A stretch of 64,000 nt of DNA. Origin: Ostrea edulis. Its lineage: Eukaryota. The notes beneath the pieces are model-generated. The model saw only the letters and a program-made list of their open reading frames with translations. It was not told where the DNA came from and made no database searches. This document shows, piece by piece, positions 32,117 through 62,289 of the stretch. Each line of letters begins with the position of its first letter. Within the stretch, counting starts at the first letter, position 1. Where the stretch lies: the NCBI RefSeq assembly GCF_947568905.1, contig NC_079173.1, positions 3,720,001 through 3,784,000 of the forward strand, given 5' to 3'. The position numbers and the translations under genes are program-made.

Positions 32117-32317
32117 TCAGACAGGAATACCTCCTCCACTTCTGCAGATAGACTTCTGACAATACCACAACAGGTCATCTCGCCCATGCTCTGTAACCTC
32201 AACAACTTTAAGGTACACCCTGTAGTTCTGGTGACAATCTATTGGTCTCTCCTGTAGATCCAATGGAGTGTTGTCCATAAAACAAAGCGTCAGCATGTTA
32301 ATTCCATCAGTCTCCAT
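32117..32317 (-). CDS. MAP3K14: Kinase gene last exon: METDGINMLTLCFMDNTPLDLQERP...LLWYCQKSICRSGGGIPV*
   Basis: Acceptor cttccag|ATG, phase 0, 201 nt; resembles the second half of the NIK C-terminal domain. Confidence 0.85.
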   Translation of the reverse strand: METDGINMLTLCFMDNTPLDLQERPIDCHQNYRVYLKVVEVTEHGRDDLLWYCQKSICRSGGGIPV

Positions 32318-35300: not shown

Positions 35301-38300
35301 ACAAAAGCTACCATTCTTCCCTCGGGGCTTCACACCTGCTTAAAATTACCTCCGCCCCCAACTAAACTTACCTGAGGTAAACCGACCGGTCGAAAAACTC
35401 GGTCTTTAATTCATCTGGTTTATCACATAGTGCAGTCAGCTAATCATACCTAGTATTGTTCCTTTACACATTCTCGCCCGTGGCTGGTCACATCATTTAA
35501 CTGTCAATTGTTAATTACCCCATTACCTAACATCCCCCCCCCCCCCCCCCCCCTGCAAGGTTTAAGGTAATTTGTATTCAGCGTAGTTTTCAAACATGAA
35601 ATGATTTAATTCACAGTTAATTATAAATAAATAGATCCGATATTATGGATAATTATAAATAAACAGATCCGATATTATGGATAATTATAAATAAACAGAT
35701 CCGATATTATGGATATGTTGGATGATACTCTATAATCGTTATTAAAAAGTTTGATAAATAAATCCAAAGATTTTCAATGTGCACTTGAAGTTAATAATCA
35801 TGAAAACGATAATGTATTTAATAATATACACTATATCATCAACACGTAAAATAAAGAAAATGAGATTCAAAGTGAGCAGAAATTAAAGTGAAATTCAATG
35901 TGATGTCAAAAGATGTCGCAAAATCGATGATTTAACTAGTTTTAACGTCTAGAAATAATTGAAGAGCAATGATTTCTTTATTTTGTGTGTACCAATGTCT
36001 CGTCTACATTACAATGCACAATTTACAGTCGTACTGATTTCACTAACCATTGATCTCGGTGTTCACGTATTTTTCCAATACCAATTGAAGGCTGCATTCG
36101 AATTCCTCCTCCTCTGTAAGAGAGGGCTGTAGTTCCTCTTTACCTGGTGATGCGTCAGGGTCCAGGTTCTACAAAAGACACAGAAAATGGAGAGGTCTGA
36201 TGAACAGTTGAATTACATCAAAACAGTTAAATTACATCACAACAGTTAAATTACATTACAACAGTTAAATTACATCACAACAGTTAAATTACATCACAAC
36301 AGTTAATGGGGAGGTCTGATGAACAGTTAAATTACATCAAAACAGTTAAATTACATCAAAACAGTTAAATTACATCACAACAGTTAATGGGGAGGTCTGA
36401 TGAACAGTTAAATTACATCAAAACAGTTTTAAAATACATCACAACAGTTTTAAAATACATCACAACAGTTAAATTACATCACAACAGTTAATGGAGAGGT
36501 CTGATGAACAGTTAAAATACATGATCACAAGCAGAGCTTGCTTTCTATTTTGAATTCCTTTCCGTCAAATTTTTGAGAAGATAATTTTGAAACTAACCAA
36601 CTCTTGTATGGGGTCTTCACTGTGCTGTGATAAGTCTCGGATTAACTTCTCTGTAACAATAAATAAAAATCAATTAATTATAATGATACAAAAACGTAAA
36701 GGAAAGAATTCCTATAAAAACATCAACATAGATTTACATGAAATGCTCGACCAACCCAATGACAACCCCCCCCCCCCCCAAGTAATTTTCCTTATGCAGA
36801 ATTCAAACGTCCCATATTGTGGCCCCAACCTAGCCCCAAAAATTCACGACACAATTACCCATAATGAAATCACAAAAATTCACGACCCAATTACCCATAA
36901 TGAAATCACACAATAAGGGGATGCCTCAATACTCTCTTGCTGTTCTGGAAAAGAAGACTTTTAAAAAAGATTTTCTTTCCTGTATACATGCATTATAATA
37001 AATTCTATCCATGCTAGCCCAAAGTAAAAAAAACAAACAGAGGCCGTCATGGGCCACATCGCTCAAATTATTTACCTTAGCCCTGCTGTTTTTAGCTATT
37101 ATGATTTTTAAGATGTTTTTGCATTCTCTAATCCCATGAAATATTTTGACCCCATTTTGTGACTCAACCTAGCCCCATTATGGGTCACGATATAACCATG
37201 GTACAATGTCAATAAAAAATCATAAGGAATCTATATACACAAAAAAACCTTAATCTTATGCTTGTCTTTTCTTGAATCTATTCTTTGTCAGGAATCTTTC
37301 ATTCAAATTTCAACTTTTCTGGTCCAGTGGTTCTCGTGAACAATTTTAAATGTCCCTACCCTATTTTTGCCTTTTCTTGATTATCTCCCCTTTGAAGGGA
37401 GCATGACCCTTTATTTGAACAAACTTGAATTCCCTCTATTCAAAGATGATTTGTACCAAGTTTGATTCAAATTGGCCCAGTGAGTCTGAAGATGAAGATA
37501 AAAATGCAAAAAGTTGACAGACAGATGGACAGCTAGATGATAAGACAAGAGGTGATTAAAAAAGCTCCTTTAAAAACATGGAATGACATTTTCACTCACC
37601 ATATTCTTCATCTTGTTCTTTTTGGCTTGTGGGGGAGGAAGACCTCGGGGTAGAAACCTTGGGCTGCAGCAGACTGAATGGCGTCTTGGGCTGATTCACC
37701 TGGGGAGTGTAGAACTTAGGAGGAGTTAAAGGACTATACGGTAAACCAACATCTGGGTTTGAAAGTCGGTATTGAACTTTTGAAGGTTTTGACGGATTTT
37801 TAACATCCACATGTAAGTTATGTTTCCGTTGGTTGGGTTTTTTGAAATTCCTCGGTGGTGGAAGAGCTTTGCTAGGGTCTGTGTCTATAACCACCATCTG
37901 TCTACTAGGGTCTATTGTAAAGGGCATGATGGGACCTGGGGCCACCACCTCTCCTTGAGACTCACTGGATTCCTGTCCACTCAGATTGAGACTTGTATTA
38001 TCTTTGATAGACCCTTCAGATTTGTTTATGCTGAAGTCTTGAGACTTATTTGTTGATGGTGTCTCATCGACTGCGAACAGATCGTCGTCATTGATGTCGT
38101 AGTCATCATCAAACATGGTGTTTTTGCGAGGTAAGGCAGGATTCACAGCTGCCATCCTTGATAACGGTTTCACACGATCTCCTACATCCGTAATTCCTGA
38201 ATCGCCTTTTCTCTTGTCTGATGGAGCGTGAAAAACGTTCTCATCTGATGCAGCATTTGGAACTTCCTCCACTGGAACCTCTACCTCCACTGGAATCTCT

Positions 38301-40779
38301 TCAACCGGAGTGTGGAAGCTCTCGCTCGACTTTGATTTGGAAGTCGACTCAAACTCAAACAGGATGGAGTTGGGAAGATTGCCATTGACTGTGCTGTTGC
38401 TGTTGTTGGTACTGTCGGTGGGTATCTCTAACATCGTCATTAAGGGATCCGGGAGAGCTAAGCTGGAGGAGTGTCTCGATATACTACTCGTTTCATCACT
38501 TCTGGTGGAAGATCCACTACGTGAACTGCTCCTTCCATCATTCTCCTCAATAAGGGTCTGAATGATTCTTTCCTGGTTGAATTCACTGCTGCCATGACTA
38601 CCGCTGTTGAGGTGGGAACTCTGGGAAGCCACACCGAGAAGATCACTGCTGCTGCTGGTTTTCGAGAGCTGCTCATTTAAAACTTGTGTATGGAGCCGGT
38701 CTATGTCTGTTTCTTCTGTTTCTTCCAAAAGGTTAGTAAAGGCAGGCAAGCTGTCACTGAAATTCGGAGGAATTTCAACCTCTTCTGCAGTTATATTGTT
38801 GCTTGGGTGGTCCATGCATGTCTCTATACCATCAAAGAGTGGAAGCACTGTTAAATTTGTGTCTATGTGAGGGAAGTCATTCAGGCTATTCACATCATGA
38901 AGATAAAGAGTCTTAAAATCGTTTGTAATATCTGACAATATATCCTTTGGGGTAGCCAAAATAGACTTTTTAAAGCTTTCGAAATTAGGGTGTTCACTTT
39001 TCGAGTCTTTAGAACTTTTATCAAAGTCTGGGTCATGAAGCTTGGAAAAAATCTCAGTAGTGTGCCTGGGAGAGACTTTGTTTTCAACCTTGACTGAATT
39101 CAACACTGTTTCTACGTCATCCTCCAGTTTCACTGACGTGCCCAAGATATTGGTAATACTTTGTTGAATGACCACACGACTGTCAAACATTTCAAAGTTC
39201 TCGTGATTATTCAAACTGTGCTCCACTTCCTTCATAATCCCATCTGTTGGTTCAATCTGTTTATTGGATGGCAGACGCATATCATCCTCCACGGTGTTCC
39301 CAGAATTCAGAACCGAGTACAGATTGTCTCCAAATTCATCTGAAAAAGACACAAGATAATCCCTGTCAAAACCGCAAGCCTTACATTCACAGTCACGTAC
39401 CAATTGATTTTCTTTTTGTAATGTTTTGGTCCTTTTTACCGTGAAGCAAAGTGTTATACGATCAAACCTCATTATCTCAAACTCGTTGGCTCTGAGAAAA
39501 AAATTAAAAGAGATATCCAAGAATTCGAGATTTAGAGGGTAAAATATTTAAAGAATAAGTAGTGGGGACTTCCGAATCGATGGTATTCAAGATACTGAAG
39601 TTCGACTGTAATTTTTTTTATAATTCTGTTCTATTGTTTATTGTATTTTTTTTTTACTCAATTAGGTATGCTACGCAGCAGTATACAGTTATTGACTGGG
39701 TTGAAGGACAGCAGTATACAGTTTTTGACTGGGTTGAAGGACAGCAGTATACAGTTATTGACTGGGTTGAAGGACAGCAGTATACAGTTAATGACTGGGT
39801 TGAAGGACAGCAGTATACAGTTATTGACTGGGTTGAAGGACAGCAGTATACAGTTATTGACTGGGTTGAAGGACAGCAGTATACAGTTATTGACTGGGTT
39901 GAAGGACAGCAGTATACATTTATTGACTGGGTTGAAGGACAGCAGTATACAGTTATTGACTGGCTTGATGGACAGCAGTATACAGTTATTGACTGGGTTG
40001 AAGGACAGCAGTATACAGTTATTGACTGGCTTGATGGACAGCAGTATACAGTTATTGACTGGGTTGAAGGACAGCAGTATACAGTTCTTGACTGGGTTGA
40101 AGGACAGCAGTATACAGTTATTGACTGGTTTAAGGACAACCGCTGTTTTGTTTGATCCAAATACGGATCTGTTGGCCCAAATCCTTAGGCTGTTGTCTAG
40201 GGACCCACTCTATAAAAATTCTTCTTCTTCTTGATGAAATGTAAGTAATATAGAAAAGAATAATAATGCTGTTTTAATTAAACTATTTCCTCAGCTCAAA
40301 TAAGTCACGAAAATGTCAGGACTTTGTGACACAACACTTTGTTAAAATAATGTTGCAGTACGTAACCATCGTGAAGCGCAAAGTTTACAGAAAATGATTG
40401 ACAGGTGTAGATCAAAGACAAACATGCACATAACTCCACCTACTAATGAACTGAAAGGCAGCATGCTGCATCATCTCCTTCGCAGTTGGTCGATCTTGCG
40501 GTTTTTTCTCTAACCCAATTTGAATCAGGTTCCATAACTCCTGATGAATGTTCTTTGGAATGTCTTCTAATGGTGCTGGCTTGGTGGCAATCTATAAATA
40601 ACACAGGCTCAGTGGGTTCCATATTAATTATCTAAACTATCTATATCTCTATCTATCTATCTCTCTTTCTCTATAAATATATATATATATCCAAATGTGA
40701 AAAATTGCCTCAATGTCTGGTAATCAATAGGTAAAAAATATGATTTACAACATGTTGCCATATCTTATTTAATTTTTTA

Positions 40780-40824
<45 letters not shown>

Positions 40825-42719
40825 CACACTCGGAGGGTTCCGTATTCATTTTCTAAATATTTTGAATAATAAATGATCCCCTAACTCAAACATCTGTGCA
40901 TCAAAGGACCCCATTGGAAATAAGCTTTTGAGCTTTCATGGGTGATCCTTGGTATTTATGTTTGTATGTATATTCTGAATAAACACGGCTTACTTGTGTG
41001 TCTCAATTAGGAAAAGAGCGAAAACTATGGAAGATACAAGTTATCCATTGATTTTTGACTCTTGATGTAGGAAATAATATAATTTTATATCTATCATCAT
41101 CTGTAACTTTCGTAGTCAATATAGATCAGCAAAACTTTAACTTGGGTCGAAAATCCAGTGAACTGAGTGAGGAAGTTAAAAATCTAATCGTAACTCTAAG
41201 AGGCGAGAATCAAAAAACTTAGGAAATCGCTCGCCTGTTGAATATTAGTGAATCTACCCTTAGATTTGTTTGAAAGAAATTTATTCAATAGGGAAATGTG
41301 GAAAATTTACCATGAAATGGTAGACCTCGAAAGTTGTTGCACAATGATGAAAACTGAGTTATATGGGAGGTCAACAGACTCACAATTAAGTGATAGAGTG
41401 ACTTAGATTTTCAGCATAACTACAATTTCAATAAAAAATTCAACTTGCTAAATATTTCAGCACATCTCAGACCTACAACATACTCACTGATCCGTTACCT
41501 CACACCCCAATACAGACCTACAACATACTCACTCTGATAAATATCTATTAAAATATTCTTTACCAAGAAATGTATGGCCGTCGCACTAGGGTACCGCTTC
41601 ACCCATGGGGGGTCCCCACTAAGAATGTGAACCAGGACACATATGGCTGCCCAGAGGTCGGATTTGAAGGCGTGTCCACTGCTCTCGGCTTTCTCTGGAC
41701 TGAAGTGAGTGGGTGTGCCCACAAGACTAGAGACTTTTGAGGTCTGCCTTCGAGCCACACCAAAGTCAGCTAGGACTATCTCTTTGCCATCTTCTCTCAT
41801 GAGAATGTTGTCAGCTGTAAAAAAAAAAATCAATATTGAATGGCAGATCAATCAGGGGGCAGGTACAGTGTAAAAACAAAATCATTCTCTTAAACAAAAA
41901 AATCATAATTTTCATCAAGATTATTATGTATAGTTAAGAACATGTACTACTTTAATTTAGCATATAAATATCAAGATAATGGTTGAACTCCCGAAAAATG
42001 AATTATACAAGGTTTTTTTTTCTCCCAAAAAGAACCAAGAGGCCCATGGGCCACATTGGTCACCTAACCCTGCTGTTGTTCCGCTGTTGTAATATTTTTA
42101 AGGATTTTTTTTTTCCAATCTTCATTCCAATGAGAAATTTTTACCCCATATTGTGACCACAACCTCGCCCCAAAGGGTCATGACATAACCACGATACAAG
42201 GTCAAACATGTCACGAGGAATCTATACGCAAAATTTGAAAGTTCTACCTTAACAGTTCAGAAGATATTGCCTTAGTCATTTTTTTTCAAATAGGCCAAAC
42301 TTCAAGGTCAAGGTTACAAGGTTAAAACCTTAGGTACCTTCACTCATTGAAACGTAAGCAGCTGTAAGTGAAGTACCACAAATATCGACTTATACCTAGC
42401 ACTCAGGGCCATAACAGTGGGGGTTCTATATCATACCAACACCTGCTGTGACGCAGGACCTCAGATTTTAAGGTTATGTCCGAACGACCACTGAATCTTA
42501 CTTCTAAATGCTGAGTGTTTGGTGAAGGAGCAATCACTACCTATTTTAGTGTCTTGAGTTTGATGCGGCCATGGCACGAGTGGGGCTCAAACTCACGACC
42601 TCCCGGTTACGAAGCGAATGCTCTACCACTGAGCTACTCACAAGGAATGCATACATCAAATATGAAAGATATATTGCTCACCATTTAAAAGTTATGAGCA
42701 AGGTTAAAGTTCTGAAATG

Positions 42720-42752
<33 letters not shown>

Positions 42753-45700
42753 ACATCATGACATTAAATAAAATTTCTTGCCATGAGGAATCCATAAACA
42801 AAAGTCCTACCTTAAATACTTCAGAGGATATTGTCTAGGTAAGGTTTTCTTAAAAAGTAGGTCAAAGTCCAAGGTCAAGATCACAAGATTGAAAAATTTA
42901 GTATCAAAAAAGGTCTAACCCCAAGAAATGCACATATGAAATATGAGAGTCCTATCATTCACCATTCAAAAGTTATGAGCAAGGTTAAAGTTTTGAGGTT
43001 TGGGTCAAATTCCAAGGTCAAGATCACAAGGTCAATCATGGCATCAAATGAAATTTCTTGCAATAAGGAATCTATATATATACAAAATACAAAAGCCCTA
43101 CCTTTAAATATTTCAAAAGATGTAGCTTAATTAGGTTAAGTTTTCTTAAAAGTCCAAGGTTAAAAACTTTAGTACTAAAAGAAAGGTCTTATCCCAAGGA
43201 AAAGTGAGAGTCCTTTCACTCACTATTCAAAAGTTATGAGCAAGGCTCGAGTTTCTGAAATACAGACAGGACAAAACACTATGCCCACGACATTATTCAC
43301 GGAGGCATAAATAGAACTGGGATCCACACAACTTGGGAATTTTATATGCATTTTGATATGATTTAGCGTGGCCTTGCTACTCTTAAAAAGAATTTGCTTT
43401 TATTAATTTTCCAAACATTCCAACATTAAGCTTTGATCTCCTATTGTGGTCCCACCCCAACCCCCAAGGACCCCAGCATTGAAAAACTTGAATTTGCACT
43501 ACCTGCAGGTGCTTGTGTATTAGTAGGACTCATCATGGCACTATTGCTCTTAAAGGGACATGGACACAATTTCGGTGGGGAAAAAATTAGATGATGAATC
43601 AATATTGTAATATTCTAGTATCTGATATGTGTGAAACATAGCAAGAAACCTAACCTCAAAAGCTGATGCAAAGATGTATTTGAAACATCTTAATTCTTCG
43701 TGTTAACACATTATGTGTCTAAAAATTCATAATGGCACCAATGTTGATGGCTTTGGTGAAAAAAACTTTAAGAAATAAATTATTTCAGTTCTTTTTTCTT
43801 TCAAAATGCACCTAAATTGATTTATCATTAACCTAGTTGAAATGTTGAATGCTTTTGACATACTCTTAAAAACCTTGGTGTTCTCACACCCACATGCATA
43901 ATGAAGCTTATTCAAATGTACATCTCCTTCGATATTTATGTTCGATTTGATTAAACATTTCAATACTACAGTATTATAGGAATAAAATGAAACAAAAATC
44001 TCTATTAAAACTACAGTTGTTGAAATAAAAATAAATTATATAGTTTCAAAATACAGCCAATCTGTTTGCACACTTTCCTTCCAAAATGAGCCGAGTGCAG
44101 ACCATGTGACTATCTCATTTGCATACTACATATGCAGATGCTATTTTCCCAATCATTCTCTACTAATTCTGATGTACAAGAACGCTTTCTTACATTTTAT
44201 GTCCTCATGAATGACTGCTTTTTTTTCCAGGTAAATCAGAACTTTTAACAGTTGATGAAACAACTGCAAAGCTTTTTTCTGACTCAGACGTCTCTTCAGG
44301 GTCTTCTGGGCTTTTATGATGTCAGTAAGATTTCCTCCTACAAAAGACATAAAATTTGACAATTACATATTCCATCAACTGATTGAATAACATTTGTATC
44401 TATATCAGTACATGTTGAAGATGACCCCCTTAAATGACTTTCAATTTTTTAAAGCACTGAAAGTTTATTTTGATTGTACAATAAATGCAACATCTTTTAT
44501 ATAAAAAAATATTGATGATCCAAAGCTATCAATCACAAATGTTTAACTATTTGAAGTTCTGGTTTTTGAAGTTCTGGTTTTTGAAGTTGGTTGTTTTTTT
44601 TTTTTTTACAATAAAGTACATTTTTGAACTATTATCCCTTCTGCTAGTATAGAGAGCTTAGTAAAATCTAACTCAATTACAGCATTATTATATAATTATA
44701 TGTACATTGTATATCATATAATTATATGTACATTGTATATCATATAATTATATGTACATTGTATATTATATAATTATATGTACATTGTATATCATATAAT
44801 TATATGTACATTGTATATCATATAATTATATGTACATTGTATGTACCTATCACAGAAAAATCTAGAAATAGAAACCATGTTCTCTAATGCGTTCAATATT
44901 TTCTAAATGAAAAACAATAATAACGATAAGTGGTACTTTCAGTGAAATATCTAGAAAGCTGACCCGTCAAAAAGGGCCCCACTAAGGTGCCTGACGGACA
45001 AACAGATGAAAATATTTAATCTTCCCAAGGAAACTTAAGTTATCATGTGTCAAGATGTAGGGTTGACAGACAGACAAAAATCGAAAGGGGACTTCCTTTG
45101 CCTAATGGAGAATTATGTACAAAATTTACAAGAATCTTTTAATGTAAGCGCAAGACTTGGTTATTCCATGCTACAATCTTATTTCAAAATTTAAAAAAAA
45201 ATTGAAGTCCCATAACTCTGCTGTAACAACAAAGATGACAAGATCTGAAAATCACAAGGATTCTTCATCTTCCTAATCCGAGTATTAGCTTTGAATTCTA
45301 TGTCCTCAATTTACTGCATGCCATAGAAAGAGCTATATAGTGAAAAATTCCAAGTCCCATAACTCTGTAACCACAAAGCCAATAACTCTGAAAATTGAAA
45401 GGGGGTCTTCATTAACGAAATCTGCGTACTGTAAATTCCTAAATATATGAGAGGAATTTATTATCGCACAATTTCGCTAGAAGCATCACTCGCGAATTAT
45501 AATTGCTCGCTTTTATTTTAATATTGCTATAAATATATGAAAAGACTGTTGATCAACAGAGCACTCGTGAATTTATCTTCTCGCGATTTAAAGTAAACAA
45601 GTCATTTCGCGATTATAAATACTCGCGTAAAATAAGAAATCTACAGTATTATGCATAAAATTCATGAAACTCTTTCCATGAAAACTTAAGGTAATGTGTG

Positions 45701-48700
45701 CCATTGAAAGTGTTGACAGACGGGCACAGTGATTACTGTAGGGCACCTGTCATATGGCGGGGCCCTAAAAGACAAAGAGCAAATTAATGATAAAAAAGTT
45801 TAGCATCTGATGTCACGTTACAAGACATGGTACAGAAGTCACTGATATTATCTTGGTTTCTCATACAAGAAATAATGATGCTTGAAGAGAGAAATAACAA
45901 GTGATCTAGAAGATAATTCTAAAACTCTAATACGAATCCTACCAGAAATGAATTCCGAAATGATGTAAATCTTCTCCTTTCTGCGAAGTGCTCCGTGGAA
46001 TTTGACGATGTTTTGATGCTCCAGATCGGACCAGATCTTGATTTCGTCCTCCCGGTACTTGGAAATGTGAATCTGTGACACAATTATCAATATTATTCAG
46101 TACCTAAGTAAATGTGAAATGTGAATCTGTGACACAATTATCAATATTATTCAGTATCTATGTAAATGTGAAATGTGAATCTGTGACACGATTATCAATA
46201 TTATTCAGTACCTATGTAAATGTGAATCTGTGACACAATTATCGATATTATTCAGTACCTATGTAAATGTGAATCTGTGACACAATTATCAATATTATTC
46301 AGTACCTATGTAAATGTGAATCTGTGACACAATTATCAATATTATTCAGTACCTATGTAAATGTGAAATGTGAATCTGTGACACAATTATCAATATTATT
46401 CAGTATCTATGTAAATGTGAATCTGTGACACAATTATCAATATTATTCAGTACCTATGTAAATGTGAATCTGTGACACAATTATCGATATCATTCAGTAC
46501 CTATGTAAATGTGAAATGTGAATCTGTGACACAATTATCAATATTATTCAGTATCTATGTAAATGTGAATCTGTGACACAATTATCAATATTATTCAGTA
46601 CCTATGTAAATGTGAATCTGTGACACAATTATCGATATTATTCAGTACCTATGTAAATGTGAATCTGTGACACAATTATCGATATCATTCAGTACCTATG
46701 TAAATGTGAAATGTGAATCTGTGACACAATTATCAATATTATTCAGTATCTATGTAAATGTGAATCTGTGACACAATTATCAATATTATTCAGTACCTAT
46801 TTAAATGTGAATCTGTGACACAATTATCGATATTATTCAGTACCTATGTAAATGTGAATCTGTGACACAATTATCAATATTATTCAGTACCTATGTAAAT
46901 GTGAAATGTGAATCTGTGACACAATTATCAATATTATTCAGTATCTATGTAAATGTGAATCTGTGACACAATTATCAATATTATTCAGTACCTATGTAAA
47001 TGTGAAATGTGACACAGTATTATCAATATTATTCAGTACCTATGTAAATGTGAATCTGTGACACAATTATCGATATTTTTCAGTATCTATGTAAATGAAT
47101 GTATATGGGTACGTCTTTTACAAAAACGATAAAATCCAACTCAAGAAATGTATAATCTTGCTCAAAATCAAGAAAGAGAAGAACTCTTCGGTTGTACAAC
47201 CTTGCTTCTGATCCTTTAGTATATACCATATATGCAGAATATTTAACGAGAATTTAATTTTGGCTTTATTAGTGACATTGTTGAGATCGCTAAAATTGAA
47301 TATAGCTAATATTTATTCCATATCTTTTTTTTAAATTCTGAAGTCGGTAAAATTAGCTAAATATATACCCATAATTTATGGACAAATCGCTAAATTTCTG
47401 TCTCACTAAAAATACTACTTATACGGTATTACACAAAATAAAAATGTTCAAATCAAAGATTTCCTAAAACTTATAAATGTCTTTAAATTTCTACATGTGG
47501 TATAAAATTGATCCAATTGCATGCATTGACAAAATCAATCACAAGCTATAATACATTTACAGCTGAGATTTAACCTCTAACCTTTTTTATACAGAACTGG
47601 TACTCTGTATTATAGTCACTGGCCAGGTGACAATTCCCAAACATTCCTCTCCCAAGGTGCACGAGTCGTACCCATTGGAAATCCTTCTGATAACGATGAC
47701 CCATGATAATCAACTTTCCCTGTAATTAAATTGCTCACTTTGTAAATACACTAGCTGTCACACAATCCTCAACGATAAGGTCAAGCTAATTATGTTCATA
47801 CCCAAGCAGGCAGCAGAGAAACTCTTGATGGGCTGTTTACAATGCATATCTATCATCTCAAATGTTCCCAGTGTTAAAATCTTGTGTGTATTTTTATCAC
47901 CTCAAATGTTCCACATGATAAAAATCTTTTCGTTTTTTATCATTTCAATTTTCCACATGTCAAAAATCTTGTGTGTATTTTATTACCTCAAATGTTTCAC
48001 GTGTTAAAATTATTTGGGTATTTTATTATCTCAAATGTTCAACATGTTAAAAATCTTGATGTAAAACAATAAAAATATAACTGATCATTCAATGTAGATA
48101 GCCAACATTTTGACTTTCTGAATGCATGAATAAAAGCAATATTTTAGCCTTAAATCTGTGTTATGTAAACAAAGACTTGAGTCTTTTTATGAATACAAAC
48201 AAACCAGTGAAACGTTAATTTTGTAATATAAAGCATCTTAATTTTGCATACTAAAGAAGATTCCACTAGGACACCGTACGAAAGAACAAACGCAAGCGCT
48301 AATATGACAAGTACATAAATAGTGTGATTCAGCGCCAAACTGACCCCGAAATGGACAGCGGGACAAGCACCAGACAACTGAGAGGTCACCGTGTTCTATT
48401 GGTTGGACTAACAGAAAGCTGTTTTTCTTACTTTACAGTCAGGGTAGATAACACCTTCCTCCTTGACACTCTTCTGCAGCAGTTTGCCGAATGTTTTGTA
48501 CTGTTGTCGGAGGTCCTCCCAGTACTTGATAACCTCCAATAAAACATCTCTGTAACCATACACTACCTCCCCTGTAAACACAAAACAATGTTGTCAGTAT
48601 CTGAAAACCTTTCGGTGTTTTCCCACTTATTTCCAAGATGTTGGATATTTTTAAAGAATATTAAAGCCCCTTGTTTCTCATGTCCCAGTAATCTGAGATT

Positions 48701-51700
48701 CAGGGGCATCTAAAATATTTGGTCTGTTTGTCTGCAAAAATTTAACCTTAGCCATAACTTTTGAATGGATGATGATAGGGATTTCATATTTCACATGTGT
48801 ATTCTTTGTGACAAGACATTTCTTTTGGATTTTCTACTTTGACCTTGGAGTTTGACCTACGCTACTATTGAAAAATTCATTAAACTTGGTCATAGCTTTT
48901 GAGCAGTTAGTGCTAGGGCTTTCATATTTCACAAGTGTATTCTCAAAAATACAATCACCCTTGGATGACAAAGTAATTTTGAATAAACAAACCATAATCA
49001 TGTGACAAGTCCTTTCTTTTGGTACCAAAATGTTGACCTCCTGACCTTGAAGTAATGGCCGAGTTTTAAATTTTCAGAAGTAGGCCATACTTTTAGAAAT
49101 TTAAACCTCGGCCACTATGTTTGACTGCTTAGAGATAGGGCCTACATATTTCACATACATATTCCAAGTAGGATCTTTCTCCGGGTACAAAATTTACTTT
49201 GCAGCCATACAGGAGCATAAATGTTTTACAAACACATCTTGTCATATCCTAAAATGAAATTATTCCTCACTATCAAAAATACAATCACCCTTGGACGACA
49301 AAGTAATTTTGAATAAACAAATCATAATCATAAAGAACCACTAATAGTAATTTCGCTTTTGCCTTCTAATCATTAGAGAAACCTAACACCTATCCCTGGG
49401 GACCTCTAATCATTAGAGAAACCTCTCACCTATCCCTGGGGACCTCTAATCATTAGAGAAACCTCACACCTATCCCTGGGGACCTCTAATCATTAGAGAA
49501 ACCTCACACCTATCCCTGGGGACCTCTAATCATTAGAGAAACCTCACACCTATCCCTGGGGACCTCTAATCATTAGAGAAACCTCACACCTATCCCTGGG
49601 GACCTCTAATCATTAGAGAAACCTCTCACCTATCCCTGGCGGTCCTGTGGGTCTCTCTTTCAGAGAGTGGAACTCAATACCGGTAGGCCAAGGATGACTT
49701 CCCTCATTGATGCTCTTCAATTGATTGCCGTAGGTTTTATCTAGAGAGAAAGGTTCTGAAGAAATCGAGGACTGAGATTCACTTTCAGAGGGGTATTCTT
49801 TCTCCACAGCAACAGCAGAAATATCGGGGAAAGCATCAGACTCAACATCAAGAATTTTATTTGCAGATTGTTCTTTGAAGGACACTTTGCGGACCAATTT
49901 TCCCTCTACAGGTGGCCTGGTCTGTGCATTTGTTCTTGGTATAGTAAATGACGGCGGTGGCCTGGTCTGTTCATTTGTTCTTGGTATAGTAAATGATGGC
50001 GGTGGCCTGGTCTGTTCATTTGTTCTTGGTATAGTAAATGATGGCGGGGGTCTTGTTACCAGGGGGGAGGATGGGTGTGTTATTATTCTATCCACAGATC
50101 CAAATCGAAGAAGAGGCTTCTTTGGTCTTGGCTTTGGTGTACGAAAATTTTGTCTTGACATCTCTACGATGGTTCCATCCTCCAATTTCTTTACAATGGG
50201 TTCCGACCTGGATGTCCTCTCCGGAGGCGGTGGTTCATATTTTTCTGGCAAGTTCAGGCTTCTATCCGATTGGTCTTCGTGAATGATGGTTAGTGATGGC
50301 ATGTATGCTGTGCTGAGGCGTTTTGGGACCGGTGGTGGATTAACTGGACTCCCTGTTCCATATCCTACCATATTTGGATTTATGCTAATTAAACTTGTCA
50401 TGGAAAAATAGTTTTCTCCTCCATCCTCCAATTTGGTCTCGGAAATCTCTTTTTTACTTTGGATGTATCCCCCCATGTACTTCTTCAGCTTTCTCCATAT
50501 CTTGTCTTCTTTGGTGAAGATCAGCATGGGATCCTCGTTGATCAGAAACGAGATCTTCCGACAGACCAGCACGGGACAACTGGTACTGCTGTCGCTGGCC
50601 CTACAGAGGAGCACGTGCTGCTGAACTAGACGAAAGAGCTGAGTGCAAAGGGTACATTTCTGGACCTCGCTGCTATAACTGCTGTTACAATTGCCGAAGT
50701 GAGAGGTCAAAGCTGTCAAGCAGGAACATATCTGACAAAGTTCAAGGTCATTATCGGACTGCTTTCGTAGACAGAGCACTAGGCATGGATTGATGTCCTC
50801 GATGAAACCCTTGATATCTATCATTAAATCTGGAGGAATATTCTGTAGGGTAAAAATAACAAAAGAAAAATGAAAATAGTAGGTGAAGTTTTAAGCAATA
50901 TCAGGTGCGTCACTTTGGTGTCAGAAATTTTTGACATTTTTTTTGAAATTTTTTCCCTAAATGTCTGTCATAGGCTCTAAGAAGGCTTGATCGCAAAAAT
51001 TACTTGCAGGGAACCAGTTTATCACAGGTGAATCGCAAAATAAAGTAGCCGCAAATAAAGGTTAGGTTTACAGTAATTATTTCTACAATAGAGTGTTATA
51101 AGTTACACTATGTGGTGATAGTAACACCTTAGCTGGTTACCTGATCCAGATTAAGCAACAGTCCCAGAAAATCGGACAATTGAGCCTGTCCATTTCGTAG
51201 CTGACCGTGTGTTTTCCTGCGGTACTTATAGTTCTGATCCACTTCCTGGTTCGTCGAGTTTATTCCCTTAGATCTCGTGAACAGGTCCCTGCTTGGTCCT
51301 CTGCCGTTGAGTGGTGGGTCCTCCTAAATAAAAGGCATAAAACGCCCAATGTACATATCCGTGTACACATACAGGAGTATGAAATCAATGTACATATCTG
51401 TGTACACGTACAGGAGCACGAAATCAATGTACATATCTGTGTACATGTACAGGAGTATGAAATCAATGTACTGTACATATCTGTGTACACGTACAGGAGT
51501 ACGAAATCACATATCCGTGTACACGTACAGGAGTACGAAATCACTTGTTAAAAATATTTCTTATTTCACAAAAGTATATTTTAGAAAATTTCAATGCCGA
51601 CAAAAGCTGATAATACTCTATCATTCTTATTCATAATTTGTTCCCTTTCCTTGTCATCCATTTCCATGAAATGTTCACTTCCTCAGAGTGAGCACACATC

Positions 51701-54700
51701 TCCCTCAGATTTTGATTTCCTCAGAATGAGCACATACTGTAAATGTATTACATTTGGCTGTGTATTCTATTTAGCGCCTTTGGCGGAACGCAGCTTCCGC
51801 TAAATCAAGTACATCGCTAAATGCCATCCGTAAATCTAGATGTTTAAAGTAATTCAGGAATGCGCTAAATCAAATATACGCTAACTTGTTGAAAAAACGA
51901 TTTCCGCCAAATATCGTATACGCCAAATATAATACGTTTACAGTATCTCCCCCAAATTTCCTCAGAATGAGTACATATCTCCCCCTAATTTCCCACAAAC
52001 CTTTTCATCTCGGTCTTTTTCATCATCATAATTCCTATTTTCTTTTTCACTCAGATCATCCCCATTGGATTTCTGTTAAACAAATACTTGCATGAATAAA
52101 AATACTCAAAATAGAAATACTCACACAGAAAATAGTCCCACAATTAGAAATACTCACACAGAAATAGTCCCACAATTAGAAATACTCACACAGAAATAGT
52201 CCCACAAATAGAAATATTCACACAGAAATAGTCCCACAAATAGAAATATTCACACAGAAATAGTTCCACAAATAGAAATACTCACACAGAAATAGTCCCA
52301 CAAATAGAAATACACAGAAATAGTCCCACAAATAGAAATATTCACACAGAAATAGTCCCACAAATAGAAATACTCACACAGAAATAGTCCCACAAATAGA
52401 AATACACAGAAATAGTCCCACAAATAGAAATATTCACACAGAAATAGTCCCACAAATAGAAATATTCACACAGAAATAGTCCCACAAATAGAAATACTCA
52501 CACAGAAATAGTCCCACAAATAGAAATATACAGAAATAGTCCCACAAATAGAAATACTCACACAGAAATAGTCCCACAAATAGAAATACACAGAAATAGT
52601 CCCACAAATAGAAATAGTCCCACAAACAGAAATACTCAAATAGAAATTCTCACACAGAAATAGTCCCACAAATAGAAATAATAGAAATACACACACAGAA
52701 ATAGTCCCACAAATAGAAATACTCACACAGAAAAAGTCCCACAATTAGAAATATTCACACAGAAATAGTCCCACAAATAGAAATATTCACACAGAAATAG
52801 TCCCACAAATAGAAATACTCACACAGAAATAGTCCCACAAATAGAAATACACAGAAATAGTCCCACAAATAGAAATATTCACACAGAAATAGTCCCACAA
52901 ATAGAAATATTCACACAGAAATAGTCCCACAAATAGAAATACTCACACAGAAATAGTCCCACAAATAGAAATACACAGAAATAGTCCCACAAATAGAAAT
53001 ACTCACACAGAAATAGTCCCACAAATAGAAATACACAGAAATAGTCCCACAAATAGAAATACTCACACAGAAATAGTCCCACAAATAGAAATACACAGAA
53101 ATAGTCCCACAAATAGAAATAGTCCCACAAATAGAAATACTCAAATAGAAATTCTCACACAGAAATAGTCCCACAAATAGAAATAATAGAAATACACACA
53201 CAGAAATAGTCCCACAAATAGAAATACTCACACAGAAAAAGTCCCACAAATAGAAATACTCACACAGAAATAGTCCCACAAATAGAAATACACAGAAATA
53301 GTCCCACAAATAGAAATACTCACACAGAAATAGTCCCACAAATAGAAATACTCACACAGAAATAGTCCCACAAATAGAAATACACAGAAATAGTCCCACA
53401 AATAGAAATACTCACACAGAAATAGTCCCACAAATAGAAATATTCACACAAAATATTTCATTTAGCTGTATTGCAATTTATATTTCCAGCCATCTAGTTA
53501 CTATTAATCAAAACGAAATAGATGGAATCAATTTCTAAATCTGTGGTAAAATAATACAATGTTCGTTTCAAAACAAAACATGTAATAGGCGTAAAATACT
53601 GTATATTGGGAAATATTCGCCCCATTTTATTTTTGTCCCATTTGCTCTCGTTGTCACCGGGCGAATTTAAGAGAAAGTGTTTTCTCTCATTTATCACAAC
53701 TATGTCTGGGCAAATTTAAAACAGGGTGAAACTGTCTGCAAGTGTAGAAATAGGGCGAAAATAAAACAGGGCGAAAATAACACGGGGCGAAAATAACTCT
53801 TTATATAGAACCATATAACCACAAAAACAGCATTTTTTTGCGAAGTACTATCATCCAACTGGCAAGTACAATTGTAGTAAACTTGACCTCCACATAAGTC
53901 CATGACCTTTAACCTTTAGCCACATAGCTATGACCATTCAATTCACTGTGCATGAAGTTTTTAACTTATATAGTTTGAAAATTATGACTATCGTTAATCT
54001 TGTGGTCAAAGTCAGAAAGACTGACCAAATTAAATACCTCCACCTCCCGCCCATCCTGATACTTAATCTAAAAGACGACAAAATTACATAAAAAAAACTA
54101 ACCCTGCCTCCATAGGCATTGTTATTATTTCCGTCACTGTCCATGGGTTCAATCCATTGAGATTTATCTCCCCTTCTGGCGGTCAAAGCGAGAATCCGGC
54201 CATCAGTGGCGCTACATACACTTACATCAGGCTCATTCCCTGTTCTCTGTGACCTTTTCTTCCTTTGTACTATTAAAAAAAATAAAGAATCATGAGTACA
54301 TTATAAGGATTATATAGGGATTATTTATGGGATTATATATGGGATTATACATGGGATTATATAAGGGATTATACATGGGATTGTATAGGGATCATATATG
54401 GGATTATATAGGAATTATATAGGGATTAAGCCAAAGATAATTCTGACATTTACATACCTCTTACTGATGTGTGTGCAGCCTGATATTTCATGCACATATG
54501 TCGATTGTCTGCCATTGTCTTGGGTATCCAGGCAGATAGCATTATTTCCAATCCACCGATGAAATTCTGAATTTCTTTGAATTTGTTTTCTGTAAACATT
54601 AAAACAGAAAACAAGATGTAAATGACAGAATATTTATCTTATTTTACACTATGTATTGGAATATTTACATACACTACGTATTGGAATATTTACATACACT

Positions 54701-57700
54701 ACGTATTGGAATATTTACATACACTACGTATTGGAATACTTATATACACTACGTATTGGAATATTTACATACACTACGTATTGGAATACTTACATACACT
54801 ACGTATTGGAATATTTACATACACTACGTATTGGAATACTTACATACACTACGTATTGGAATATTTACATACACTACGTATTGGAATATTTATATACACT
54901 ATGTATTGGAATACTTACATACATTACGTATTGGAATACTTACATACATTACGTATTGGAATACTTATATACACTACGTATTGGAATATTTATATACACT
55001 ACGTATTGGAATATTTATATACACTAGGTATTGGAATACTTATATACATTACGTATTGGAATATTTACATACACTATGTATTGGAATACTTACATACACT
55101 ACGTATTGGAATATTTACATACACTACGTATTGGAATACTTACATACACTACGTATTGGAATATTTATATACATTACGTATTGGAATACTTATATTTCAT
55201 AATATGAGTACATTGCTAGAGAATGGCTTTAGACATAATACATTAAGGAGTGATTTCAAACAGACTCCCTGCAATGGAAACAAGATAGGGTGAGCCTGTT
55301 TGAAATCTCCTTCCCCTTACAGCTGGTACTCTTGGAATTTTATATCATCAAAAGAACATCCTATACTTGTTCCTATTTCCCCTGCCAGCCTCCCCGATTC
55401 ATCCTATACTTGTTCCTATTTCCCCTGCCAGCCTCCCCGATTCATCCTATACTTGTTCCTATTTCCCCTGCCAGCCTCCCCGATTCATCCTATACTTGTT
55501 CCTATTTCCCCTGCCAGCCTCCCCGATTCATCCTATACTTGTTCCCATTTCCCCTGCCAGCCTCCCCGATTCATCCTATACTTGTTACTATTTCCCCTGC
55601 CAGCCTCCCCGATTCATCCTATACTTGTTCCTATTTCCCTGCTAGCCTCCCCGATTCATCCTATACTTGTTCCTATTTCCCCTGCCAGCCTCCCCGATTC
55701 ATCCTATACTTGTTCCTATTTCCCTGCTAGCCTCCCCGATTCATCCTATACTTGTTCCTATTTCCCCTGCCAGCCTCCCCGATTCATCCTATACTTGTTC
55801 CTATTTCCCTGCTAGCCTCCCCGATTCATCCTATACTTGTTCCTATTTCCCCTGCCAGCCTCCCCGATTCATCGGAGGTATAAAATATTAAAGTTGAAGC
55901 CTAAGTATCTAATCATTAATCTGTACCCCCCCCCCCCCCCCCCCCCCCCCCATTAAATTCATTGTTTTCTTTTCCCTTCGATTCCGTATCATCTATAAAT
56001 TCAAATTACATGCACACCTGCTAGCTCTATGTTTTCCTGAAGATCAGTCATCCACTTTGTAAGACTTCCTCCGAGCCTGTCGACATTTACCTCGCTGTCA
56101 CTATCTATGTCTCCTTTCTCTGCAGACCATTCTGTTTCCTGTTTCCTGCAGACTTCCTTATTCACTTTCAATCCTTCTCGCATTTCTTTTATTTCTTTGG
56201 TTTCGTAAATTGTGTCTCTTTGGATCAGGTTCTTCTCGTCCGTTTTCAATTCTACAATTATTACCATTCAGTGTAATCTTGATGAGAATGCAGTGAGAGG
56301 ATTGACAAGTAAAATAAAACAGTTCTAGTGTAGCATCACGAGCAGTCAACTCATTATCAAACTATGTATGTTTAGAAACAAGCAAGATCTTTATAAATAC
56401 CCACTTTTATAAATGTAAGTCATTTTAAAAAATTTTCAAGCGAATTTACGTCTTTAATTTATCAAAGTAACAAATCCTCATTTATAATCAATGTAAATTC
56501 TTTGAATTATTATATTTTATTAATGTAGCAGAAAAAAATTTCTTTTCATTACTTCTAATGAATGGGCATTCTGTTGACAGAGTTGTGTCCCTTAAAGAGG
56601 GGAGGGATGCAAGGCTCAACAACTCCCCCACCAGGTTTCCCAAATCCCCCATGTGTTCCTCAGCACTCCTGCTAAAATCACGCAACAATATAGAACTATC
56701 GTAACTCAATCTGTAATCATGTAACAATTATATAGAACTATCGTAATTCAATCTGTAATCACGTAACAATTATATAAAACTATCGTAATTCAATCTGTAA
56801 TCACGTAACAATTATATAGAACTATCATAATTCAATCTGTAATCATGTAACAATATAGAACTATGGAATTCAATCTGTAATCACATAACAATATAGAACT
56901 ATCGTAATTCAATCTGTAATCACATAACAATATAGAACAATTGTAATTCAATCTGTAATCACGTAACAATTATATAGAACTATCGTAATTCAATCTGTAA
57001 TTACGTAACAATTATATAGAACTATCGTAATTCAATCTGTAATCACGTAACAATTATATAGAACTACTGCAATTCAATCTGTAATCACGTAACAATTATA
57101 TAAAACTAACTCAATCTGTAATCACGTAACAATTATATAGAACTATTGTAATTCAATCTGTAATCATGTAACAATTATATAGAACTATTGTAATTCAATC
57201 TGTAATCATGTAACAATTATATAAAACTATTGTAATTCAATCTGTAATCACGTAACAATTATATAGAACTATCGTAACTCAATCTGTAATCATGTAACAA
57301 TTATATAGAACTATCGTAACTCAATCTGTAATCACGTAACAATATAGAACTATTGTAATTCAATCTGTAATCACGTAACAATTATATAGAACTATCGTAA
57401 TTCAATCTGTAATCACGTAACAATTATATAGAACTATCGTAATTCAATCTGTAATTACGTAACAATTATATAGAACTATCGTAATTCAATCTGTAATCAC
57501 GTAACAATTATATAGTACTACTGCAATTCAATCTGTAATCACGTAACAATTATATAAAACTATCGTAATTCAATCTGTAATCACATAACAATATAAAACT
57601 ATTGTAATTCAATCTGTAATCACGTAACAATTATATAGAACTATTGTAATTCAATCTGTAATCACGTAACAATATAGAACTATTGTAATTCAATCTGTAA

Positions 57701-60700
57701 TCACATAACAATTATATAGAACTATCGTAATTCAATCTGTAATCACGTAACAATTATATAGAACTATCGTAATTCAATCTGTAATTACGTAACAATTATA
57801 TAGAACTATCGTAATTCAATCTGTAATCACGTAACAATTATATAGTACTACTGCAATTCAATCTGTAATCACGTAACAATTATATAAAACTATCGTAATT
57901 CAATCTGTAATCACATAACAATATAAAACTATTGTAATTCAATCTGTAATCACGTAACAATTATATAGAACTATTGTAATTCAATCTGTAATCACGTAAC
58001 AATATAGAACTATTGTAATTCAATCTGAAATCATCGTAACAATTATATAGAACTATTGTAATTCAATCTGTAATCACGTAACAATTATATAGAACTATTG
58101 CAATTCAATCTGTAATCATGTAACAATTATATAGAACTATCGTAATTCAATCTGTAATCACCGTAACAATTATACAGAACTATCATAATTCAATCTGTAA
58201 TCACGTAACAATTATATAGAACTATCGTAATTCAATCTGTAATCATGTAACAATATAGAACTATCGTAATTCAATCTGTAATCACGTAACAATATAGAAC
58301 TATCGTAACTCAATCTGTAATCACGTAACAATTATATAGAACTATTGTAATTCAATCTGTAATCACGTAACAATATAGAACTATTGTAATTCAATCTGAA
58401 ATCACCGTAACAATTATATAGAACTATTGTAATTCAATCTGTAATCACGTAACAATTATATAGAACTATTGTAATTCAATCTGTAATCACGTAACAATAT
58501 AAAACTATTGTAATTCAATCTGAAATCACCGTAACAATTATATAGAACTATTGTAATTCAATCTGTAATCACGTAACAATTATATAGAACTATTGTAATT
58601 CAATCTGTAATCACGTAACAATTATATAGAACTATTGCAATTCAATCTGTAATCACGTAACAATTATATAGAACTATCGTAATTCAATCTGTAATCACGT
58701 AACAATTATACAGAACTATCATAATTCAATCTGTAATCACGTAACAATTATATAGAACTATCGTAATTCAATCTGTAATCATGTAACAATATAGAACTAT
58801 CGTAACTCAATCTGTAATCACGTAACAATTATATAGAACTATTGTAATTCAATCTGTAATCACGTAACAATTATATAGATCTATCGTAATTCAATCTGTA
58901 ATCACGTAACAATTATATAGAACTATCGTAATTCAATCTGTAATCACGTAACAATTATATAGAACTATTGTAATTCAATCTGTAATCACGTAACAATTAT
59001 ATAGAACAATTGTAATTCAATCTGTAATCACGTAAAAATATAGAACTACCGCAATTCAATCCAAAATTACATAACAATATAGAACTATCGTAATTCAATC
59101 TGTAATCATGTAACAATATAGAACTATCGTAATTCAATCTGTCAATCTCTAAAGAAATGTATTGATTCCGCTTTCCATGATTTCTGAATTTTAAGCATTA
59201 ATTATTAATATAAGATGCAAATTTTTATCATACCATATAAGTGGAATTATTTGTGAGACATAAATTTAGCGATTTTTTCCATTAAAACGGGTATATATAT
59301 TTAGCGAGAGTTAATTCTAGCGACTTTATAATTGATAACTATTACCTCCGATATGAAATCAATCGTTAGCGATATTCAAATTTAGCGATCTCATCACTGT
59401 CGCTAATAATGCCAAAATTAAATCCTTGCTAAAAATTCTGCTTAATATACAGTAACTTAATTGTCTGAAAATCAAAATAATTCAATACCTCACTTAGATG
59501 AAATCCATTACCTATCCTCACTAATAAGCACAAGTTTTAACCATGTTGAAAAACAAAGGTTTTAGATCTCTATATACAAGTAGCGTTACATGAAATAAAG
59601 TAATAAATTTAGGAATTCTACTTTTTTCTGACAGGATATAGTACTGATATGCTTGACAGATTGTCTAGACACGGTGTACTGACTTTTGCCTGCAGGGAGG
59701 ATGATCTCGGACACTTTGTACGACCAGAGTCAGCTCGTTCTCGGGAAATAAACGCCTTGATGGACTCTGTTGTATGATGCATTTGTTTGGTTGGCTCTCT
59801 ACGATATCAACATTAGGATCTCTATTTGGTTTAAAGCTTTTTCTCTCATCCTCTCCGAACCCGTCGTTAACATTTTCAGTGTAGTCAGTCCTTCAACAAA
59901 AATTTGAAATACATCAGATTATTTTGATATTTTTTTGGTCAGCATTTTGAGCTATGTGGTATAGTAGCAGGTTATATGTGACTAGTGACTATGTGGTATA
60001 TAGTCGCAGGTTATATGTGACTAGTGACTGTGGTATATAGTAGCAGGTTACAAGTGACTAGTGACTATGTGGTATATAGTAGCAGGTTACAAGTGACTAG
60101 TGACTATGTGGTACAGTAGCAGGTTACATGTGACTAGTGACTGTGGTATATAGTAGCAGGTTACAAGTGACTAGTGACTATGTGGTATATAGTAGCAGGT
60201 TACAAGTGACTAGTGACTATGTGGTACAGTAGCAGGTTACATGTGACTAGTGACTATGTGGTATAGTAGCAGGTTACATGTGACTAGTGACTATGTGGTA
60301 TAGTAGCATTTACATGTGACTGTGGTGTAGTAGCAGGTTACATGTGACTAGTGACTATGTGGTATATAGTAGCAGGTTCCATGTGACTAGTGACTATGTG
60401 GTATATAGTAGCAGGTTCCATGTGACTAGTGACTATGTGGTATATAGTAGCAGGTTACAAGTGACTTGTGACTATGTGGTACAGTAGCAGGTTACATGTG
60501 ACTAGTGACTATGTGGTATATAGTAGCAGGTTCCATGTGACTAGTGACTATGTGGTATATAGTAGCAGGTTATATGTGACTAGTGACTATGTGGTATAGT
60601 AGCAGGTTACAAGTGACTAGTGACTATGTGGTATAGTAGCAGGTTACATGTGACTAGTGACTATGTGGTATAGTAGCAGGTTATATGTGACTAGTGACTA

Positions 60701-62043: not shown

Positions 62044-62289
62044 CTACAATATCATATGTATAGTCATTAACATACAGATAAAGAAGAGTGGAGAAAATGA
62101 CAAAAATCATTGTCGAAAGTGTAACCTGTGACCTTTCATCTGAGAAAGAAATTGTCAGATTTGAAGACAGGGCCGTTTTCAGTATTCAGTGGTTCTGGCC
62201 TCAAGACCATAAACTGAGAATATTCTTAAGTCTAAATTTCAAATCCTGCTAACTTTTGAAATAATTTTCATAAACAAATAAGATTTTCA

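Follow-up and report, generated by a model that had tools for sequence, protein, structure and literature searches.

The 64,000-nucleotide stretch of Ostrea edulis DNA analysed here (NCBI RefSeq assembly GCF_947568905.1, contig NC_079173.1, positions 3,720,001 to 3,784,000 of the forward strand; hereafter the window, whose own numbering is used throughout) very probably codes for a divergent zinc-binding domain of the TAZ2 fold within the regulatory N-terminus of a mollusc NIK-like kinase, and we propose that this domain works as a peptide clamp. The identity of the domain, its fusion to the kinase and the conservation of both across Mollusca are demonstrated computationally, through sequence comparison and structure prediction. 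TAZ domains in animals are treated as a hallmark of the CBP/p300 co-activators; they are rigid scaffolds that clamp short amphipathic helices, and the known role of TAZ2 is the binding of activation domains. NIK is the gatekeeper of non-canonical NF-kB signalling. In the order proposed for the oyster protein, a disordered N-terminus would be followed by the TAZ2-like module with an amphipathic helix, a Pro-rich linker of ~300 residues, a NIK-type pre-kinase extension, a kinase domain with all catalytic motifs, a long disordered tail and a small conserved C-terminal domain. The module sits ~350 residues ahead of the kinase domain, and it is predicted to consist of four core helices held by three zinc sites, of which site 1 would have been remodelled from HCCC to CCCC and sites 2 and 3 would keep the canonical HCCC ligands.

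The Cys/His motifs lie on the minus strand in one large coding exon of 1213 nt (50842..49630; acceptor cag|AAT, donor G|GTGAG), which is covered by a spliced contig described below and encodes the TAZ2-like module and then a conserved, mostly Pro/Ser-rich linker; open reading frames (ORFs) that are 59-71% identical to this exon are found in related species. Module residues are numbered here from the first residue of the exon, whose start at 50842 reads NIPPDL. On the exon translation, the motifs are spaced by helices. Site 1 is C20-LVL-C24 … C36-QI-C39-S-C41 (C-x3-C-x11-C-x2-C plus the extra C41), site 2 is H48-FGN-C52, 10 residues and C63-TL-C66 (H-x3-C-x10-C-x2-C), followed by TQLFRLVQQ, and site 3 is H76-VLL-C80, 8 residues and C89-PVLV-C94 (H-x3-C-x8-C-x4-C). 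The ligand codons occupy positions 50561-50785, within the interval 50550-50790 for which an earlier, sequence-only reading of this DNA had proposed a TAZ-type zinc finger fused to a NIK/Tpl2-family kinase. The three sites of that reading were recovered exactly, and its impression that the histidine of the first site is replaced was correct, as site 1 is CCCC.

The motifs are well kept in the family alignment A4, which holds 19 sequences. C63, C66, L72, H76, C80, C94 and K121 are invariant columns, and H48, F49 and W116 are near-invariant. Among the ligands of site 1, C20, C36 and C39 are conserved in 17/17 and C24 in 14/17 sequences; at site 2, H48 is conserved in 18/18, C52 in 14/18, and C63 and C66 each in 19/19; at site 3, H76, C80 and C94 are each conserved in 19/19 and C89 in 12/19. 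Because these columns are conserved across the family, the motif pattern is more than a chance arrangement. The TAZ2-like core, with predicted zinc sites C20/C24/C36/C39, H48/C52/C63/C66 and H76/C80/C89/C94, spans residues 5-100 (50543..50830, minus strand). It is followed by a family-specific C-terminal extension of the module, residues 101-130 (50453..50542, minus strand), containing the conserved amphipathic helix IW116RKL119KK121Y, in which W116 is found in 18/19 and K121 in 19/19 family members. AlphaFold2 predicts a helix at residues 112-129, and the extension has no counterpart in the 87-residue TAZ2 core.

Several searches connect the module to TAZ2. First, an exhaustive HMMER search of 1.84 billion representatives with a profile of three oyster sequences returned just 17 relatives at E<=1e-3, several of them unnamed fragments, and A4 was built from the modules of those relatives. 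A word search with the exon returned four ORF fragments only, because the full-length relatives lie outside its length window. Second, the A4 profile was compared with 177,635 distinct PDB sequences and gave 15 matches, all of them p300/CBP TAZ2 (E 1.9e-6 to 3.7e-3), the next match having an E-value of 1.7; all four ligands of zinc site 2 and all four of zinc site 3 align with TAZ2 residue for residue. Third, 14 of the 19 excised modules match Pfam zf-TAZ at E<=1 (best 1.2e-5), and three family fragments do so as whole ORFs (E 2.5e-4 to 7e-3); the whole-ORF relatives score 17-22 bits, under the Pfam gathering threshold of 25 bits. Finally, the three nearest clusters in a search of ESM features were all zf-TAZ (0.90, 0.88 and 0.88; best 202/256). 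The TAZ profile check proposed with the sequence-only reading therefore comes out in its favour through the family, whose profile finds only TAZ2 in the PDB and most of whose members match zf-TAZ (PF02135); the window copy itself is too divergent for Pfam.

Structure prediction led to the same family. The AlphaFold2 model made with three sequences had a predicted local distance difference test score (pLDDT) of 47.5 and was not taken to the fold search, and the model made with A4 reached a pLDDT of 80.6 and a predicted template modelling score (pTM) of 0.74 and was all-helical. When this model was searched against the PDB with Foldseek, the nine best matches were all TAZ2, with probability up to 1.00 and a template modelling (TM) score by target up to 0.79. 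In a VIA-align comparison with 48,161 representative chains, three TAZ2 entries ranked first (Z 8.3, 7.5 and 7.0), ahead of the next chain (4.9) and of TAZ1 (4.4); when the Foldseek list was re-superposed, the Z values of 13 TAZ2 entries ran from 9.4 to 5.4, and the chain that followed them reached 3.5. The best superposition was on CBP TAZ2 (1f81; Z 9.4, root-mean-square deviation 2.2 A, 87/87 residues) and used model residues 5-100. The predicted fold is of the TAZ2 type rather than the TAZ1 type, and with this match at full coverage the TAZ fold expected by the sequence-only reading was supported by prediction. The five nearest ESM Atlas models also all belong to zf-TAZ clusters, namely CBP-like acetyltransferases, nematode TAZ proteins, plant ZZ-TAZ and BTB-TAZ. 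Since the A4 profile, the Pfam matches and the fold matches agree, we take the module as a divergent TAZ2-fold domain, most likely stabilised by zinc. The sixth row of the Atlas search was an arthropod RFX-type winged-helix cluster with a TM score of 0.55 by query over 93 residues and no zf-TAZ annotation; it may contain a further TAZ-like helical module that annotation has missed, or the match may be due to chance.

Compared with the TAZ2 domain of CBP/p300 (CH3, zf-TAZ PF02135), the mollusc module shares the predicted four-helix fold and has HCCC ligands at zinc sites 2 and 3 in the same positions (H-x3-C…C-x2-C and H-x3-C…C-x4-C), and the inter-site helix TQLFRLVQQ corresponds to KQLIAL of TAZ2. 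However, sequence identity is only ~20%, the first two ligands of the CCCC site 1 are shifted along helix 1 with a C-x2-C knuckle, a conserved extra helix follows the core, and the host protein is a kinase instead of an acetyltransferase. The charge of the core also differs, with a net value near zero (+2 in the window, -7 to +5 across the family) compared with ~+13 counted on the p300 TAZ2 segment. TAZ domains outside CBP/p300 are found in the plant BTB-TAZ (BT) proteins and in small nematode TAZ-only proteins, which are structural and feature neighbours of the module, but their partner domains are BTB, ZZ or none, and none of the TAZ clusters listed by the Atlas searches carries a kinase.

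The connection between the TAZ exon and the kinase can be followed exon by exon. Downstream of the TAZ exon, on the same strand between 47.7 and 40.4 kb, five exons carry pieces of the Pfam Pkinase domain in profile order. An upstream coding exon (51141..51323, minus strand; AG/GT, donor 51141|51140) ends in …LSDFLGLLLNLDQ in phase 0, is kept in the Magallana gigas contig L001 and, in the spliced contig, runs straight into the TAZ exon. A bridging exon (exon B; 48432..48571, minus strand), also in the spliced contig, encodes the NIK-type pre-kinase extension EVVYGYRDVLLEVIKYWEDL…EEGVIYPDCK. The five kinase exons, all on the minus strand, are exon 1 (47582..47719; Pkinase positions 3-33), with the glycine loop GRGMFGNC and the beta3 lysine in FCIKK; exon 2 (45943..46072; positions 46-85), which like exon 1 is covered by the spliced contig; exon 3 (44194..44337; positions 82-126), with AG/GT and an open frame, which ends in the catalytic loop HEDIK; exon 4 (41564..41814; positions 127-207, E 7e-14), with the SDNILM, DFG and SPE motifs and MAP3K8 as the best PDB match; and exon 5 (40440..40591; positions 228-262), with an open frame, which completes the kinase domain. 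When nine exons are joined in a model with AG/GT at each internal junction, they read as a single ORF of 1416 codons.

The spliced contig (record 1 of X1; 4794 nt, depth 46, ~94% identical to the window) is intron-less, and its six pieces, contiguous in record coordinates, cover 51141-51325, 50001-50842, 49629-49910, 48431-48570, 47582-47718 and 45942-46072, with exact exon-to-exon junctions and zero depth in unique intron bins. This coverage places the upstream, TAZ, bridging and first two kinase exons on one spliced molecule. The contig comes from a close relative and not from the same species, and the RNA nature of its run is a guess; none of the runs recorded as RNA contained the TAZ stretch. 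At a larger scale, the Saccostrea echinata protein XP_061185770 (P0005; 2105 aa), which we used as a proxy for the full protein of the window in kinase comparisons, aligns in collinear order with the minus strand between 62045 and 32120, so the gene spans at least 30 kb of the window. In all, it has at least 17 exons between ~62 kb and ~32 kb. The window protein is ~58-60% identical to both the Saccostrea and the Magallana orthologues, at about equal distance. With the spliced contig, the single ORF and the mollusc proteins that carry both the module and Pkinase, the claim of the sequence-only reading that finger and kinase belong to the same gene, for which it had suggested cDNA as the check, is upheld.

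The kinase is read, from similarity, as a mollusc NIK-like (MAP3K14-like) serine/threonine kinase. Against the PDB, the kinase domain of P0005 gave MAP3K8/Tpl2 (2.5e-39) and NIK/MAP3K14 (1.1e-38) as tied best matches, six orders of magnitude ahead of other families, the next being at 1.9e-32. The difference between the two lies before the kinase core. P0005 residues 980-1100, which correspond to exon B and the start of kinase exon 1, matched 11 PDB sequences, all of them NIK (best E 2.5e-8), and the alignment starts ~45 residues before the glycine loop, over the N-terminal extension of the NIK crystal constructs. Thus, the NIK/Tpl2 family assignment of the sequence-only reading was right and can be narrowed toward NIK by a pre-kinase extension that matches NIK only. 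The spliced ORF contains each of the motifs GRGMFGNC, FCIKK, HEDIKSDN, DFG and SPE, by which the kinase is apparently catalytically competent. No single PDB entry matches the kinase domain better than Tpl2/COT (MAP3K8; 2.5e-39, and 5.5e-11 with exon 4 alone), but this match is limited to the kinase core (query 54-302) and leaves the pre-kinase extension outside; Tpl2 is a short protein without zinc fingers. With NIK, the mollusc protein shares a kinase domain among the two best PDB matches, a recognisably kept pre-kinase helical extension, an extended N-terminal regulatory region, part of it Pro-rich, and a long tail at the C-terminus. It differs in being ~2 times as long (roughly 1300-2200 residues) and in its module, as the exhaustive module search detected no TAZ-like module in vertebrate NIK.

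The same architecture is found widely in molluscs. The exhaustive module search, made with the oyster-only profile, returned only mollusc or unnamed proteins, and all eight of the long proteins among them (from Saccostrea, Argopecten, Mytilus, Haliotis, Patella, Lottia, Littorina and Batillaria, named 'uncharacterized', 'hypothetical' or 'protein kinase domain-containing') have Pkinase ~300-450 residues after the module. Searches with the kinase region add Magallana gigas, Crassostrea virginica, Saccostrea cucullata, three more scallops, two unionid mussels, Littorina littorea, Elysia and the chiton Liolophura. In a local hmmsearch with A4, the module was detected in 10 of 12 mollusc proteins recovered by kinase similarity, including that of the chiton, and unrelated kinases in the same file gave no module match. 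The two proteins without the module are a partial Elysia model and isoform X3 of Crassostrea virginica. Every full-length module-bearing mollusc protein, from oysters, scallops, mussels, unionids, gastropods and the chiton, also has Pkinase. Because the module and Pkinase occur together from chiton to bivalves, the TAZ-kinase architecture is, on the evidence of these gene models, old within Mollusca (chitons, gastropods and bivalves), and it is unannotated: PF02135 is not listed in the precomputed Pfam annotation of any family member, and the automatic names in the family are uncharacterized, MAP3K2 or MAP3K8. The C. virginica isoform X3 (P0046, ~728-760), a computational RefSeq model, uses an internal donor after …CLVICLKKQSG and joins straight to the pre-kinase exon, by which it loses most of the module and the whole linker and keeps the kinase. 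No equivalent GT donor is evident by eye in the window sequence.

By analogy with other TAZ domains, the probable role of the module is in peptide docking or autoregulation. A short amphipathic helix would be gripped by hydrophobic grooves of the rigid scaffold that the module forms, and this grip would serve either to bring a partner or substrate to the kinase or to restrain regulatory segments of the kinase itself. We give trans recruitment and intramolecular regulation comparable weight. In one version of the former, which the sequence-only reading had put forward, the module would bind the activation domain of a Rel/NF-kB, STAT or p53-type factor and bring the kinase onto a transcription-factor substrate. 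This is possible, and we hold it tentatively. The fold and the ligand pattern are those of TAZ2, an activation-domain binder, the PDB titles of the TAZ2 matches list complexes with STAT1, p53, p63, p73, C/EBP, MEF2 and E1A-type transactivation domains (TADs), and the kinase is NIK-like, vertebrate NIK acting on the NF-kB precursor p100. However, the strong basic charge with which TAZ2 meets acidic activation domains is missing from the mollusc core, and this weighs against a plain copy of acidic-TAD binding by TAZ2. A near-neutral core does not require an acidic activation domain as its peptide ligand, and with identity to TAZ2 of only ~20% the binding surfaces need not be conserved.

Intramolecular autoregulation is a second tentative possibility. 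Here the module would bind a helix of its own protein, either the W116-x2-L119 helix next to it or part of the long tail, and would gate activity, stability or partner access, in a manner analogous to the N-terminal negative-regulatory (autoinhibitory) region of vertebrate NIK. The conserved amphipathic helix always follows the module, with its W116 and K121 nearly or fully invariant. A weak structural hint points in the same direction: when the model was superposed on the TAZ2-p53TAD fusion 5hpd, model residues 5 to 118 were aligned, ending at chain residue 3023, which we take to lie in the fused p53 part. The aligned ranges give first and last residues only, however, and contact between helix and groove is a conjecture. 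Isoform X3 of C. virginica, which is without module and linker, fits a detachable regulatory region, but it is weak support as a computational model. A more specific picture, which we consider doubtful, would combine these elements in a TAZ2-type clamp wired into the mollusc NIK-like kinase, by which the kinase is targeted or restrained through a helical motif. The motif might be a Rel/NF-kB-type activation domain or the protein's own conserved W-x2-L helix acting as a pseudo-ligand that is displaced by a partner.

Besides the charge of the core, several results weigh against our identification of a TAZ2-fold domain in a NIK-like kinase. Neither the exon nor the 100-residue module of the window matches any Pfam family, even at E<=10, and phmmer searches of PDB sequences with the module alone and with the three-sequence profile gave no match. 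Zinc site 1, with its CCCC ligands and altered spacing, cannot be aligned ligand for ligand to TAZ2, and certain family members are without a ligand at C24, C52 or C89, although all 12 ligands are present in the window copy. The Foldseek E-values are weak (0.085 to 0.95), as is usual for a small helical domain. On the kinase side, a pattern for the TRAF3-binding motif of vertebrate NIK had no match in any of the 17 full-length members scanned with it, which is a lead only. The missing Pfam match and the C-x2-C knuckle of site 1, which is not TAZ-like, would suit another zinc module with a superficial resemblance to TAZ, such as a MYND, ZZ or PHD-type finger or a lineage-specific treble clef. 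We regard this as very unlikely. No rival zinc-finger family rises above noise, PHD_4 and Zn_ribbon each matching 1/19 members at E 0.3-0.44; below E 1 the profile search of the PDB gives TAZ2 only; nothing usable is left in the ESM-feature search once PF02135 is excluded; and the all-helical predicted fold superposes on the entire TAZ2. Other zinc-finger families are thus largely ruled out as the identity of the module by the ESM, PDB-profile and Pfam searches. That the TAZ and kinase exons are separate genes, joined by an annotation or assembly artefact, would gain from the guessed nature and foreign species of the run behind the spliced contig, but it is extremely improbable given the exon-only coverage and exact junctions of that contig, the canonical splice sites and continuous ORF, the same architecture in independent gene models of more than 12 mollusc species, and an environmental contig (L002) in which a TAZ-like ORF is followed by a Pkinase ORF on the same strand.

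The remaining parts of the gene were placed through P0005. Downstream of the kinase, a long low-complexity C-terminal coding exon (37595..39491, minus strand), in a frame continuous with the kinase exons, aligns to P0005 residues 1304-1945. Three further 3' coding exons (36049-36141, 33437-33571 and 32120-32362; together 32120..36141, minus strand) were found by tblastn of P0005 residues 1970-2105, with 61-69% identity. The C-terminal region (P0005 residues 1960-2105, ~140 residues) matches no Pfam family and gives just weak ubiquitin-like hints in ESM features (best 0.83). On the 5' side, further, poorly conserved coding exons corresponding to P0005 residues 212-553 lie within 51998..62045 (minus strand) and are marked by collinear tblastn high-scoring segment pairs at 62045-61935, 56670-56623, 56246-56025, 54590-54462 and 52075-52001, with a conserved block at 51998-52087 in L001. 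Within the large exon, Tandem Repeats Finder reports an in-frame 45-bp tandem repeat of three copies (49911..50047, minus strand), which encodes PPPSFTIPRTNEQTR in the linker after the module. The spliced contig of the close relative is without 49911-50000, a length of two copies, and orthologues of other species have one; from these interspecies differences, the repeat is a recent copy-number variation within a coding exon. Just past this exon (49560-49640, minus strand), there are two tandem copies of the donor-site motif CCAGGGATAGGTG(A/T)GAGGTTTCTCTAATGATTAGAGGTC, which puts a second, near-identical GT site ~50 nt downstream.

Around these exons, the window is rich in repeats. Many long tandem arrays, whose repeat units measure tens of bases, lie at 8.4-12.9, 14.9-15.8, 39.66-40.21, 52.2-53.4, 54.6-55.9 and 60.3-61.9 kb; several of them are inside introns of the kinase gene, and they contain long spurious ORFs in several frames. 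Two intronic segments, 48064-48260 and 48655-49245, show a summed contig depth of up to ~8e5 in all genomic runs, with many joints, and we interpret them as interspersed repeats of high copy number. Downstream of the kinase gene, its neighbour on the same strand is a gene for a DUF92 (PF01940, TMEM19-like) integral membrane protein, of which two exons were found at 13497-16779 (minus strand; E 3e-17 and 1.3e-24).

In conclusion, the parts described here, a TAZ2 fold and a NIK-like kinase, are known, and their combination is a new domain architecture together with a divergent TAZ subfamily. The literature search found no paper on a TAZ-kinase architecture or on a characterised mollusc NIK, and the sole co-occurrence of zf-TAZ and Pkinase among its results was an unrelated plant receptor-like kinase (RLK) paper, which was set aside. 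With no paper or database annotation of the combination found, the remark of the sequence-only reading that it did not recognise this architecture from described families stands. In a survey of the immune gene set of Aplysia, a NIK or Tpl2 orthologue was not identifiable from domain annotation (PMC9334734). The present finding gives mollusc immunology a candidate NIK. It also places the TAZ fold in a new kind of host protein and reveals a phylum-wide subfamily that the Pfam zf-TAZ model misses. In addition, the 130-residue module, its ligand cysteines and a natural isoform without the module offer a testable handle on kinase recruitment or restraint. To the best of our knowledge, there is no earlier case of a TAZ domain serving as a kinase-targeting or autoinhibitory module. 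Vertebrate NIK is regulated by a TRAF3/cIAP degradation switch, and if the clamp proposed here is real, NIK regulation in molluscs would be unlike that of vertebrates.

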